From Oikopleura dioica (taxonomy: Eukaryota > Animalia > Chordata), in assembly GCA_907165135.1 (NCBI GenBank), contig OU015569.1:10230001-10294000 (forward strand): 64,000 bases of DNA. Direction: 5' to 3'. Shown one piece after another: positions 20,601 to 27,423 of this stretch. The notes below the pieces were generated by a model. That model was not told where the DNA came from. It made no database searches and saw nothing but the letters and a program-made list of their open reading frames with translations. Made by a program: the position numbers and the translations under genes. How positions within the stretch are numbered: the stretch's first letter is position 1; the number at the start of each line of letters is the position of its first letter.

Positions 20601-23163
20601 ATTCGAATGACAAACCTTGTGGCGACCAAGTGCTTGAACCGCATCATCCTCACTGGCGAGCAAAACAAAGGCATCCCCTGTCGGCTTGCCCTCCGCTGTC
20701 TTGATCAAGAAAATGCCGTCTTTTCCGTTTACGATATGAATGTCACACAAAAACTCGAGGATGTCTTGTTTGGTGGCGGAGAAAGGAAGCCCTCTCATCC
20801 TGGCGATGGCGGCGCTACCCTATCGAGCAAGTAAGGTTTATTTTTGTTGTTAACTCATGCCTGTCCAAGGAACCTTTCTACTTGAGGGAGTGTTCCGGCG
20901 TTCATTTGGATAAAGTCAATGGATGGAGCTTTGAAAACTTCAATGTATCGGTTGCCCATGTGCTGACGGTGCCGTTGTAGTGCAAGATTTCTGATTACCC
21001 GGTTCAAAAAAACATTCCAATCGAAACTTTGAATTTGAGTGGTAAATAGTTAGAATAAAAAACCCTGCCTCCGATTTTAATTTCATGATAATTTCAAAAT
21101 TACGAGTATAGCTGAAATATTGAGCAATAAGAGCTAAGAACCGAACCTGTGTTCTGAGTTTTCAAATCGAATAAGTGCTTCTCCTATCAAAGGTTCATCA
21201 TGATTGTATATTTGGTGCTGAGAAAAAAAAATGTGGATGAAACTTTATCCTGATCTGCGTCCATTTTGATTAAGAACGAGCGAGACTCCACCAGAAGGGA
21301 TGTTCAATCCACGGAAAAATTTCGCGAGGTCGTGATCTGAACACTGCCAAGGGATTCCGCGCACTCTTACACAGGTGTCTTCTTCCACGATTTCATGACC
21401 ACTTCAGAATCGATAAATCCAAATATTGCCTTTTCAAATGACTTACCATGCTCTTGTTAGCAGACGTGAACTGATCATTTCCATAAGATTATTGAAGTCA
21501 CATTTGAAGTCTTCAAGTAGCTTTTGTTCAACTTTGGCCATATCTAGCAGCTTATCTCCTGTTGATCTTAACCTTAGATGCTCTATAAAAAATTTATGAT
21601 CATCGACGAAAGTTTTTCTGACTAACCTAAGATGTCTTCGAAATTAAAGTAAAGAGGTGTGTGTGGGATGGACTTTCTGAAGCATTTTCGTAGGTCCACA
21701 AAGTGATGGAGACACTGCGGCAGTGTCCGACCAAACTTAGCAGCCAAGGGATGCAAATACTGACGAAGCCACTCAGGTCCGTCTGTTACAGTTAGAAACT
21801 TTCCAGAAAGGGCTTGGACATCATTGGCGAACTGGTTCAGAAGACGGCGGCTATTACAAGAGGGGGAGTCGCGAGTCAGCTCCTTTTTCCACACGATTTC
21901 GCCTGTTTTTGTATTGTACAAATGGTACTTTATGAAGCCAATCGTTATTTTCTGAAAAAAAAATAGACATTTGTTGATAAATCCCTGCGTTGATAAAAAT
22001 GGAACTGAAGCAAGAAATACTTTTACTTGAGTTTATTTACATGAGTGGTGAGCACCTACCAGGGCCGCCAAAAATCAGTGGTATTTTCAGTGGACTGAGC
22101 AGTCTGCAGAAGAATTTGTGAAAGTCTGAGACGTTCAAGAAAGAGATTTTGGTTGTACAAAATAAAAGATGAAGAAGGAATTTGATAACCAGGAGGACTT
22201 TCAGTCGAAGATTGAGGCGAAGGCGTGCTACCGATTGAACGTGGTCGTTTCTCATCAGGTGTCGTCGAATAATTGTCGTTCAAAGCTCGTTTAGGTACTC
22301 TGATGTTGGGGAGTGGAAGGGTCGGTATAGGAGAATCGGCAGTCAGTGAATTAATGGCAGCTTCCAAAAGACCTGCTCTGGAATGAAACCTCTGTCGTAC
22401 CGGTGAGTGTCCCATTGATTCGAGTGTCGTTTTCAATGATTCAAAGGACTGGTTTAACTTGTTCCTGTAAGACGCGCAAGCTTCTTTGTTGCTCAGTTGA
22501 GTCGAAGGGTAGTTTTGGAAGGAAGAAGTCTTGATTGGCATCTTCGTCAGCATCGCGATCGCCCCATCGATAATTCGAAAACGATTCCAGTCCGAAATGT
22601 CGGGAAAGTTAGGTTCGACTAGCCTTCGAAGTTCCGAAAAGCGTGAATTCAACTTGTTTCGGGACTTTTTGGAGAAGTCAGTGTTGGTCTTTGGGATGTT
22701 CATAGTGATGATTTTGCTTGATTGTTTTTGAGAACTGATTTGAGTTTCTCGGAAAGCAGGGTTGCTTATAAGTCGAAAATCAAGCGGCGCTGTTTGGGAT
22801 CAAACATAAACATCTGTTCTGACAGGAGATAGCTTCCTTCTGAGGACAGGGGAAAGCAATCAAGAGATGAGAGGAAGAGAGAGGTCAGAAGTCGGTTCAT
22901 TAACGCGCGCAGCTGCGAACGCTGAACAAGCTGATGGCACCTGATCGCATGAGGATGATGGTCTCAAAGGAGCCATCTTGTAAAAGTATGAATGCATCCT
23001 GTGATCTTTAGTGACATCAAAGAATTCAATTGATAATTCAAAGTTTCTCTTTGAAGAATAATAATTTTGAAAAAAATAAAAATGAAAATTATACCTGGGG
23101 TCCAGGGTGGTCAGGGTGAAACTGCAATATCTCTGGATTAGCGCAAACATTTAAGAGTAGCAT
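17698..23163 (-). CDS. ESRP: Epithelial splicing regulatory protein / fusilli
   Basis: N-terminal DnaQ-like region ([16 protein letters not shown]) and three quasi-RRMs: [63 protein letters not shown]...[10 protein letters not shown]...[24 protein letters not shown]. Exon 1 (23095-23163, 23 codons) joins in phase to the exon starting at 21951. Confidence 0.92.
22056..22703 (-). CDS. Intronless tandem double-HLH protein with C-terminal WRPW (Groucho/TLE-binding), nested in ESRP intron 1
   Basis: HLH1 [18 protein letters not shown]...[16 protein letters not shown]2 [17 protein letters not shown]...[13 protein letters not shown], ends DFWRPW-stop. TATAAG ~22765-22770 and AATAAA at 22032-22037. 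Confidence 0.85.
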   Translation of the reverse strand: MNIPKTNTDFSKKSRNKLNSRFSELRRLVEPNFPDISDWNRFRIIDGAIAMLTKMPIKTSSFQNYPSTQLSNKEACASYRNKLNQSFESLKTTLESMGHSPVRQRFHSRAGLLEAAINSLTADSPIPTLPLPNIRVPKRALNDNYSTTPDEKRPRSIGSTPSPQSSTESPPGYQIPSSSFILYNQNLFLERLRLSQILLQTAQSTENTTDFWRPW

Positions 23164-23544
23164 TCTCTTTCAAGAAGCAAAAATATATGTATTTTTTGTA
23201 AGTTAGGTTTTCAACAAAAGAAATCTTGAGAAGCAATACCGGATTCCGAAATAGTTTTTCAAGTGGCCAGATCAGCCACACGATGGATCCCACGGACAAT
23301 GGAAACTACAAAGTCAAACAAAACTACAACCCTGGACACCTGTTGAGTTTCTCACTTCCTGCAGCAAGAAGCAATCCGACAAATAAGCACTTTGCAAATT
23401 TTCGAAGATATCCGAAAATGAGTTAGCCCAGCTGGAGAAGGAGCAAACACCAAAACACAATTTTTGGTCGATACTTTCAGAGTTTATTTGAATGAAGTTT
23501 CAATTGACAGTCTTTCGGTTTATTTTGTTAAATTTACAGCATTT

Positions 23545-26500
23545 TTAACCACTGAAACGTTCTTCGACCAGCACAAGCGACACCTTGAAAACTTCGCTCG
23601 CGATTTTACCGATTCCCGTAAAGGCTTTCTGGAAAGCCTCCTGGTTTCGTTCTTTGAAAGCACGCTTCATATCGGCTTCCTTTGCCTCAAACTCGTAGTC
23701 GTAATCGACCACGAGTTTCTCTTCTTGTACTTCACAAATGTAGAGGTCATCCTTCCGTCGGCGGAGAATCTTGACAGGATAGACTGATCCGGCACTATAA
23801 TTGTCGATGCATTTCGTCCGGAGAACAACCTTCTTTGGTAGGCTACAGTCGATAGACTCTTAGAATATATTGAAACAGAGCTTATTCAAAAATTTACCTA
23901 GATTCTCTGGAATGGGAAAGAGCCGGCTCGATGCAATGACCAAGCATTTCTCCGTGTCAAGCTCTCTAACCAAGAATCGACCAGGCGGCAAGACTCTTCC
24001 CAAGTATCGTGGTTTATCTCCAGGAACGAAATCAACTCGACCACGTCGCCACCCTGCATCAGGAACTGTCGGGTAACTCTTGTCTTTGATGATCACGTTC
24101 ATGCCCTTTTTGATGTTGTCTTCATGTAAAGGGACATTTTCTGAAGAGTTCATGGCATCCTAAAAATGATGAGACACGAATTGAAGTTATCCTCAAACAT
24201 TCATCATTGCATACCTTTACCAGATTATTGAAATCTATCCAATCTTGTTTGATACACAGAGTGATCACATAATCCCTCTTACCACTGTCGTTGAATCTGA
24301 AAAAATTTTATGTATGTGTTAAGAATTTAGGACCTAAATTTTAGGTCTTACTTCTCTGAGTTAGGGATAGCCATCACTCGAACATTTAGAAACATGCATT
24401 CGTATATCTTCCCGCACTTGAATACTGAGGTCAAGACAATTTTTCTCCCGTTGACTGTGCATGCTAGAAAAAAAGATTATTACCATACGTATGATTGTTA
24501 TTTACTTGAGAGCTGAGTGCTGTCTTGTTCTTTTTGAGCGACAGCAGCATCATCGACGGTAAGGTCAATCTGCAATTCCAAGGGGCTTGGAAGATCGTGA
24601 CAGGTTTCTCGAGAAGGAACCTCTATCAACGGAGCTTCTGGGATCAGCAATGGAAGATCAATGGAATCACATGGAAGGACAACCGAACTCTTGCGTACGG
24701 TCAAGCTATCCATCAAGCCGAACTTAAAATCGCTGCGTACGACAGCTTTCACAGCGAATGCATATTGGTATTCTCGGTCGACCAGTGGACGATACTAGGA
24801 CTTTCTCAAGCGTATAATTTTAAAAGAACTTACTTTGTAGACACGGGAGCATGGATGAAGTTCTGTCATCCCGTAATCGATCAGATGTACACTGACGGTC
24901 TCATCTGAAGATCCAAGTTGGAACCCTTTGATCTGGCCACGGACAGGTCGAGCTTCGAAAACCTTCGAATGGACAACGACAATGTCCCCGATAATTGGCT
25001 CCACAATACTTTCGGTTGGTGAAATCTCGTCGGACATACGGCGAAGTGTTTCAGAGTCTGTTTTCAGATATCCCTCGATGTACGTGTGTTCCTTTACTTC
25101 ATTCTTCGACATTACAACGAGTTCAAACGGGTTGATCATGTTCAAGGGGTCGTCGAGTCTTCTCAAGAGTCAACAATATTTGATATTATATCATAACTTT
25201 ATTAACTTTAAAATATTTGACTCTCTGACCTGCGAGGAATGCTGTTTTTGATCATTCGCAAATGTTCTTCTCTTTTTCCCTCCAAAGTGCTTTCTATGCT
25301 TTCATCAAGGTTCTTTTTCTGAAATTTTAACATCGAAATCCAACAATAGAGAAGAAATCCTTCAAAGATTTGAAGAAAAAATTCTTATTTTACCTTCTTT
25401 TTCGAGCTGATTGATCTCTAGGACCTGCAGCGAATTATTATCTTTTCAAAATCTACTTCAATCTACAAAGCAAAATCCCGATAAACGTACCTCAATCGGT
25501 GCAAAATTGACGATTTTTAGCGGTGATTCCTCAGTGATCACGTGCTCGCCTTCTTTCTCGTCGCTTGAATTTATAGTCTCTTCATGCTGAGGGTATAATC
25601 GCTGTGCTGATTCCAATGAAGTGTTCGTCGGCCAAGAGGAAGCAGATTCATTTTGAACCGGCAGAGGACCGGGCTCAGTAGGGAACTCACACTCCTCCGG
25701 ATCAACAATTTTCGATGGAGTTGGCTGAGCACTACTGGTAGGGTAAATCGCTCCGAAGTAGCCATTCTTCGATGCAAGTTCTCGTTTGTAAGTTAATGTT
25801 ATCTCATCGCCTTCACACAGTTCGGCCACTACTGCATCGTCACAACCAACAATGTACGTCCGTAAAGCAAGAGGAGGGAACTTCAAAAGTGTCTCCGGAA
25901 GTACATAGTATTTGTCTGTTATGCGTGTCAAAAATGAGTGACCAGAAGGTTAATAAAATTAACGATAGATAAAACGCATTCCTATCAAGTCGTCAGTGTT
26001 GCCGAAATCAACGAAGAGTACTTGTGGCGCAGTGCTGTCAATATCGACAACTCGTGAACGAAAGTACTGTTTCTCAAATTTCGAGAGAACTCATTTTGGA
26101 CTCGACAAGTAAGCTTAATTTAGAAAACTTATCAATAATTTCATATTATTTGATGAGCCCGTTCGTAAATCGCCAACTTTCGGAGGACCAGTCGGCTGCT
26201 TCAGCGTGCTAATCGACTTCGACATTGCTTCGTTGATCTCATCGAGTACCTCTTGGTCCTCTTCGCGCAGAAACCAAAAGCCCTTCTGCTCATCTGTTTT
26301 GGATGTTATTTCTCCTCGGAACTCTTTTTCGAAAGTAACTCTCTGCGGTGGAAGTTTATGCCGAAGAATCTCAGAAATCTATGATAGGATTGCGAAAAAT
26401 ATGCATTTATATAAAGACCTAAATAAGTAGGTCTATTTTTAAATCTTCGAATCCCTTAACGAAAGTGGTCGCTCGATAGGCCCGCTTTCCTTCGTTCTCG

Positions 26501-27423
26501 AAGAAAGGAGACTTCCAGTGACGACTTCAATTGGCCAATTCCAGTGCTTAACCTTCTTCACATTTTCCATCTTCATTCGATGATCGGACACTAAAAAAAT
26601 CAAGCTTTGCTTCAAATTTTAGGCTTAAGCTTACAGTGAAGCTTTTCCATTTGATCATCAGTGATCTCATAACACTCAGGCGTAAAGATCACCAACGCAG
26701 GTTTGTTGTTCCAGAATTCTGGCTCGATCTTTCTGAATGGACATTTCGTCGAATTGACCACTTCACTGTATCCATAGTCGACGAAGAAAACGAGATGGCC
26801 ATTGTTTTCTTTCTTCTCAAGATAAATGACTCGGTTCCAGTTCTCAGACTTAGCAAAAAATCCGTATATGTATTCATACAGTTGACAACTTACGTGGAAA
26901 CACAAGACACGTTGAAAAGGAAGAGGGCTCGCAATGTTACTTCCTTCGTTTCGTTCAACGTAATAGTTCAACACCCTCGCGAACATCTCTCTTTGCTCAT
27001 CAAGCTCGTCCGTCGTAAAGCTCCAAAGCCCTTCCGAAACTTCGAGTAGAAAAAGACTCGAGAGATCTTTCATCTCTAGTTTGAGTATTCCATACTCTTC
27101 TCCCGATAACTCCATCTCCTTTCACGCGCTATCAAGGTTTATTTTCCTTGCTCTATTCTCGACCTATTTCTCTCGATAAATGTGAAATAAATGCGTTGCC
27201 TGGCGCTTGGGCAGTGGCGTTCGGCTCGATTTAGAGTCGTCTTGCCTTTGGATATTAAAAACAGAGTTCGGATCGAATTCGGACTTCTTTCGAGAAGACA
27301 CAGGTTCATAATTCTTTGCAAAGACATGATTCTAGCAGGTCGACTCTACTCAGGACTGTTCATAATGAGTGACGCGCTTGATGTAGATCATCTAATTGAG
27401 CAAATTACCCGGAAATTATTCAT
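23545..27423 (-). CDS. Multi-Tudor-domain protein (TDRD-like, ~4 extended Tudor domains)
   Basis: Tudor cores WNRVIYLEKKENNGHLVFFVDYGYSEVV, VLFVDFGNTD...LPETLLKFPPLA, VSVHLIDYGMTEL, WRRGRV...FLVRELDT. Start and stop reconstructed by eye. Confidence 0.8.

Follow-up and report, generated by a model that had tools for sequence, protein, structure and literature searches.

This study revealed that the stretch of Oikopleura dioica DNA analysed here (64,000 nucleotides of contig OU015569.1, referred to as the window) encodes a protein with two helix-loop-helix (HLH) units and a terminal WRPW tetrapeptide, and that this protein belongs to a family in which both units lack the E-box-reading glutamate of the basic region, Glu9. 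The two HLH folds, the conservation of the family, the selection acting on the gene, the tail and the conservation of the promoter are all supported by our results. There is, in our estimation, about an even chance that the protein acts as a single-chain pseudo-heterodimer recruiting Groucho at a non-E-box site. Neither the family nor its accessions were mentioned in the papers searched (subscription journals fell outside this coverage), and the double-HLH, Groucho-tailed family is thus undescribed in that literature.

A preliminary description of the window had suspected a chordate, more precisely a tunicate, as its source, which is indeed O. dioica, and had noted a REF-1-like architecture of double HLH plus WRPW, which proved to be real and conserved in the family. 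As judged from the sequence, it did not include the loss of Glu9 from both basic regions or the persistence of canonical Hes genes; the failure of the Notch site, the nesting in ESRP with its inversion, a third gene copy and Max as a rival ancestor were likewise worked out here.

The gene and its product

The gene is an intronless ORF on the minus strand (22056-22703), whose translation yields 215 aa with FWRPW as the last residues before the stop codon. The WRPW tetrapeptide (22059-22070, minus strand) is a Groucho/TLE-binding motif (PMC1950541), and a Groucho/TLE gene is present in the O. dioica genome. The basic stretch noted previously is also found: KR-x12-KRPR (aa 138-155; 22239-22292, minus strand), a putative bipartite NLS followed by Ser/Thr-Pro sites. 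It lies in a disordered tail, with low pLDDT in the AlphaFold model, and its basic cluster is kept across the family alignment. A hexamer resembling a polyadenylation signal, AATAAA (22032-22037, minus strand), begins 18 nt past the stop codon and also occurs 3' of the stop in three homologous loci (L002, L052 and L053).

With regard to selection, comparison with four close homologues showed saturated synonymous sites (pS 0.70-0.76) against a pN of 0.20-0.24, with a dN/dS of about 0.08-0.12 where computable; pN was lowest in the first HLH unit, and the linker was the least conserved part. Saturated pS together with low pN indicates a real coding gene under constraint, and these substitution patterns confirm purifying selection on the ORF. 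No database record contains the exact 215-aa sequence. The raw runs, which come from another lineage, contained no reads on the HLH gene and hardly any on the genes around it, and are uninformative for expression; the single matching contig looks genomic-like.

Two HLH units

Unit 1 (aa 7-53; 22545-22685, minus strand) was delimited from Pfam, AlphaFold and the family alignment and carries an invariant W39 and R41 ahead of helix 2. It is followed by a linker, which family alignment places at 22491-22544 (minus strand, 18 aa in the window protein), and by unit 2 (aa 72-123; 22335-22490, minus strand), which was recognized from profiles, fold and alignment and has a loop of Hes length. Pfam HLH scored 28 bits on the whole protein, over two stretches and against a cut-off of 20.7, and 18.8 and 14.7 bits on the separate halves containing units 1 and 2, respectively. 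Across the family, PF00010 matched 16 of 20 unit-1 and 14 of 21 unit-2 sequences, and the two unit profiles matched each other (hhalign 92%, E 5.5e-7). None of these sequences matched Hairy_orange or any bZIP Pfam family, a negative whose weight for Orange is limited by the fact that PF07527 has no match anywhere in the O. dioica genome. The two HLH units and the missing Orange domain of the preliminary description are therefore both upheld.

AlphaFold, which had been suggested as a check for a four-helix bundle, predicts helices at residues 12-32, 41-53, 72-96 and 109-123 with pLDDT of about 90. The whole-chain pTM is 0.51 although less than half of the chain has a pLDDT of at least 70, and the structural matches of the full model span residues 11-124; taken together, pTM and match span suggest one compact four-helix bundle in the model. 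The tendency of AlphaFold to close any two HLH units on each other counts against this intramolecular reading. Foldseek with the full model and two Atlas searches gave no useful match.

Given that unit 2 occupies the place of an Orange domain and alone falls below the Pfam cut-off, the protein could be read as a divergent Hes whose second unit is simply Orange. We regard this as very improbable. Folded alone, unit 2 reaches a pLDDT of 89 and finds bHLH chains as 11 of its 15 top structural matches (VIA Z-scores 4.8-5.8, below the tool's caution level), with no Orange chain in the top 50; calponin-homology entries among the structural matches of the full model were set aside as a common helical arrangement. 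The unit 2 profile, which as stated matches that of unit 1, aligns over 45 columns with the bHLH of O. dioica Hes, the loops being equal in length and free of gaps, but not with the region after the Hes bHLH (E 0.35). Unit 2 is thus confirmed as an HLH rather than an Orange domain.

A 62-column tree that also contained 19 further O. dioica bHLHs placed units 1 and 2 in separate groups, which a weakly supported branch (78/67) sets jointly apart from the rest; this pattern would fit an origin of both units from a single bHLH through internal duplication. The linker measures 16-26 aa in Oikopleura-like members and 53-78 aa in a distant clade with WRPYL tails. It is never shorter than 16 aa, a length that should in principle suffice to span the gap between helix 2 and the following basic helix.

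Recognition helices

The specificity of bHLH proteins normally depends on the choice of partner combined with a nearly invariant Glu9. We numbered the basic-region positions of 22 family sequences with Arg13 as anchor. In unit 1, Phe8 is found in 18 of the 22, Ser9 and Arg13 in all, and position 12 is Cys or Ser; in unit 2, Asn5, Cys9, Tyr12 and Arg13 are each invariant (22/22). Glu9 is consequently absent from both units without exception, being Ser in the first and Cys in the second, and Arg12 has been lost from both as well. Basic residues are scarce, with a mean of 3.7 Lys/Arg in positions 1-13 of unit 1 and 2.6 in unit 2, which counts against DNA binding. The N-x7-R motif of bZIP proteins is invariant in unit 2, whereas its Asn is found in only 6 of 22 unit-1 sequences; bZIP identity was rejected, as the basic motif is followed by an HLH rather than a leucine zipper and no bZIP Pfam family matches.

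Glu9 is the most critical E-box residue, with positions 5, 6 and 12 making further base contacts; REF-1, HLH-25 and HLH-26 bind CACGTG, while bHLH-PAS proteins with Ala9 read non-canonical half-sites (PMC3113581). Since Glu9 has been lost from both units, the family should not read E- or N-boxes in the way that Hes and REF-1 do. Nevertheless, invariance sits on the DNA-facing positions 5, 9, 12 and 13 although the core of distant members is only 31-50% identical. We infer a double-HLH family that does not read E- or N-boxes and yet keeps a constrained surface where DNA would bind. The single-chain pseudo-dimer proposed earlier remains consistent with the model and with the linker lengths, whereas reading of the E-/N-box type is not expected from the sequence.

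Distribution of the family

A word search returned 11 close homologues, and a profile search with the two-HLH core returned 26 representatives, 17 of them below 1e-10; two repeat-like profile matches (P0038 and P0041) were left out. The family comprises at least 22 full-length aligned proteins, all with two units and a terminal WRPW or variant, as in the FWRPW end first noted for the window protein. WRPW itself is found in 13 of the 22 and WRPY in 4, with FRPW, WRAW, WSPW, WRPF and WQPW occurring once each, and 12 tails carry one extra residue. The deviations (WRAW, WSPW, WRPY) and the extra residues count against our best explanation. Core identity to the window protein ranges from 75% down to 31%. 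The named members are exclusively O. dioica proteins; those of the others that were traced come from marine metagenome or assembly contigs, and the contigs carrying the distant WRPYL clade are intron-poor and of animal origin. The family is likely restricted to larvaceans.

The O. dioica genome contains three copies, of which one is the gene in the window. Its closest paralogue agrees in every residue with chr2.g7709, and the genome is accordingly that of O. dioica OKI2018_I69. The third copy (G000:C4:710174-710974; L104 1168-1968) has introns and, when its exons are read separately, both units but no WRPW; its public model, chr1.g98, begins at unit 2 and misses the three upstream exons with unit 1. 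This copy is possibly a non-repressing antagonist or the parent of the intronless copies. Other genomes contain recent family duplicates, namely a tandem pair at L108 (282-950 and 3435-4103) and two copies within a single assembly (L050 and L052), one of them beside a phosphodiesterase gene.

Relationship to Hes and Max

Against 26 O. dioica bHLHs, a merged family profile scored best with Hes (20.3 bits; next 12.7), and against the PDB it gave 21.8 bits for Max and 16.2 for HES1. The 62-column tree provides no firm attachment of the family to HES. Descent from Hes is somewhat more likely than not, to judge from the WRPW tail, the length of the loop and the Lys that the third copy has retained, whereas an ancestry in Max, to which the helix-2 start and the helix-1 Phe would point, appears doubtful. 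None of the 41 HLH matches in the genome was seen to be a Myc, Max, Mad or Mnt bHLH; a degenerate Max helix-2 pattern had no match at fewer than two mismatches and matches at chance level above; Myc_N likewise found nothing in the genome, its control being blank too. O. dioica is reported to have lost mad and mnt (PMC7854359).

The genome retains three canonical Hes genes (L010, L059 and L060), whose basic regions are intact, so the double-HLH family is an addition rather than a replacement. Two of them, L010 and L059, carry strict CSL sites, which in L059 include two cores head-to-head, 26 bp apart. The C-terminus of L010 is FRPW rather than WRPW.

Promoter

The preliminary description had listed upstream E-boxes at 22811, 22910 and 22938 and proposed Notch/proneural control. 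All three are present, where chance alone would give roughly one CANNTG per 250 bp, but only the one at 22910 is deeply conserved, those at 22811 and 22938 not being conserved in orthologues. This CAGCTG forms a module with a homeodomain-type site, TAATGA (22897-22915, minus strand), and promoter alignment showed the two in this order in all eight O. dioica-group promoters, the chromosome 2 paralogue included; the module occurs once in the window against 0.12 expected. Among eight distant loci, three have CAGCTG at -159 to -209, where about 0.025 would be expected per such interval, the interval having been chosen post hoc. An alignment of seven promoters and a motif table revealed a further set of proximal blocks (22766-22861, minus strand): GATTG, resembling a CCAAT box (22857-22861), CCTGT (about 22845), the TCF-like TTTGAT (22799-22804) and the TATA-like TTATAA (22766-22771), the factor names being suggested by consensus. 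These blocks are found in most of the eight O. dioica-group promoters.

The CSL-type TTCTCAC cited as Notch input (23349-23355) had to be rejected. It lies in the 5' leader of ESRP, reads GGCTCTCAC in L052 and L053, and departs from the full YGTGRGAA consensus. In other lineages its position is downstream of the HLH gene, and it is upstream here only because the nested gene has been inverted in the window lineage. No conserved CSL site was found in the proximal promoters of 14 family members, and the HLH gene is not obviously under Notch control as far as its sequence tells. CAGCTG belongs to the class A type of bHLH sites, so that the earlier idea stands in its proneural or myogenic half but fails in its Notch half.

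Host gene

The whole HLH gene lies within intron 1 of an ESRP1/2-like host (21952-23094, minus strand), a GT-AG intron of phase 0 according to the splice sites read from the sequence. In the predicted host model, with exons translated separately, the exon that follows finds its match in human ESRP1 (E 4.8e-8), and a qRRM exon lies downstream. Comparison with L052 and L053 defined the first ESRP exon (23095-23451, minus strand) as a conserved 5' leader plus a 23-codon start (ATG at 23163; coding 23095-23163); the exon is 80% identical in these loci, with the ATG and donor conserved and leader indels that are not multiples of three. The leader (23165-23451) is about 80-88% conserved between lineages, more than nearby coding genes, and may contain regulatory RNA elements or upstream ORFs. 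A multi-Tudor gene (23500-27115, minus strand) lies directly upstream of ESRP, an order kept in L051 and L053.

At the equivalent place in L051-L053 and in a contig from another lineage, the HLH gene runs antisense to ESRP. The segment at about 22017-22989 is inverted in the window lineage relative to other O. dioica-group genomes, as the contig joint on opposite strands indicates, with breakpoints placed approximately. The two ends lie close to the arms of a perfect 10-bp inverted repeat (22017-22026 and 22980-22989), which would fit a microhomology-mediated inversion, with the qualification that one such pair per 1.2 kb is expected by chance and only its position is suggestive. Given that the inversion puts the nested gene and its AATAAA on the ESRP strand, ESRP transcripts could be cut short in intron 1 in the window lineage only.

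Comparison with known bHLH families

The Caenorhabditis elegans REF-1 family (REF-1, HLH-25, HLH-26, HLH-29 and others) resembles the window protein in having two bHLH domains and no Orange domain (PMC3606163, PMC4683635). REF-1 proteins bind CACGTG (PMC3113581) and transduce Notch, whereas the Oikopleura family has no Glu9 and no conserved CSL site; they belong to the nematode phylum, whereas the Oikopleura family is found in a chordate, in which it coexists with canonical Hes genes. No nematode-like two-bHLH protein was among the profile matches examined, and REF-1 was compared by description only. Proteins of the REF-1 family carry a Groucho-type tail.

With HES/Hairy/E(spl) proteins, the Oikopleura family shares the terminal WRPW, Arg13 and a long loop, to which unit 2 can be aligned without gaps; it differs in having two HLH units, no Pro6 in either unit of the 22 sequences, no Glu9, no Orange domain and, in the intronless members, Arg in place of the loop Lys. 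Max, the best profile match among solved structures, has in common with the family the beginning of helix 2 (SRA-x-IL) and the helix-1 Phe, but the family has no leucine zipper, no His5 or Glu9, longer loops and a WRPW tail; the helix-2 position is occupied by Lys in the third O. dioica copy, which is Hes-like rather than Max-like there. Like SREBP, the family has Tyr12-Arg13 in unit 2. The class I bHLH-PAS proteins (HIF-alpha, SIM) offer a precedent for a half-site shifted by Glu9 loss (PMC3113581); in contrast, the Oikopleura family has neither PAS nor zipper, and both halves are changed within one chain. An HLH with a weakly basic N-terminal part recalls Id/Emc proteins, from which the family differs in its invariant DNA-facing residues, its two units and its WRPW. 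Overall, the window protein would work like a Hairy-type Groucho-recruiting repressor of REF-1-like build, while departing from HES, REF-1 and Max in the features that define each of them.

Proposed mechanism and alternatives

We propose a larvacean transcription factor that would have arisen by internal duplication of one bHLH. Units 1 and 2 would pack into a four-helix bundle, a structure for which bHLH proteins normally require two chains, so that no partner would be needed and two different recognition helices would be joined as an obligate pseudo-heterodimer. With Glu9 replaced by Ser and Cys, the protein would bind an asymmetric site that is neither CANNTG nor CACNAG. It would enter the nucleus by means of the bipartite NLS and repress through WRPW, which would recruit Groucho, and its promoter would respond to CAGCTG beside a homeodomain-type site rather than to CSL. 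The wider proposition, namely that appendicularians possess monomeric, partner-free and Notch-free bHLH pseudo-heterodimers with both helices off the E-box and a new asymmetric site, representing a second independent two-bHLH origin, we hold to be slightly short of an even chance.

It is rather unlikely that the family does not bind DNA and acts as an Id/Emc-like protein or tethered co-repressor, its units grabbing bHLH partners (E protein, Ascl or Hes) while WRPW brings Groucho. The loss of Glu9 and Arg12 and the few basic residues would agree with such a role, and a CAGCTG-driven promoter would then let the protein dampen class A bHLH activators in a negative feedback loop. However, Id proteins have, to our knowledge, no constrained basic region, whereas positions 5, 9, 12 and 13 are invariant in the Oikopleura family; a closed intramolecular bundle, as modelled, would moreover hide the dimer surfaces. 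Somewhat less likely again is DNA binding with a changed code by an intermolecular homodimer, in which 1-1 and 2-2 or domain-swapped bundles would occupy tandem sites. REF-1 family proteins are reported as homodimers, the only precedent and one that counts against the single-chain reading, and the long linkers of the distant clade point the same way; against this stand the confidence of the single-chain model and the divergence of the two units while each remained conserved, as would be expected of fixed partners.

We consider it quite improbable that the protein is a REF-1-like Notch target which has replaced Hes and binds E- or N-boxes. The architecture speaks for it, as does the fact that among O. 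dioica bHLHs the merged profile matches Hes best, and distal CSL sites would be its remaining route, the promoter search having been proximal. It is opposed by the lack of conserved CSL sites in 14 family promoters when two Hes genes have strict ones, by the assignment of the cited TTCTCAC to ESRP, by the missing Glu9 and by the continued presence of three canonical Hes genes.

If the single-chain pseudo-heterodimer is correct, a natural bHLH with two conserved non-Glu helices in one chain would provide a test of how the E-box code can be rewritten when both halves are permanently joined. It would also bear on whether two-bHLH proteins, REF-1 included, fold intramolecularly. O. dioica is suited to such work, as culture and knock-down are feasible. 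The family adds an undescribed group of transcription factors to a chordate noted mainly for the genes it has lost.
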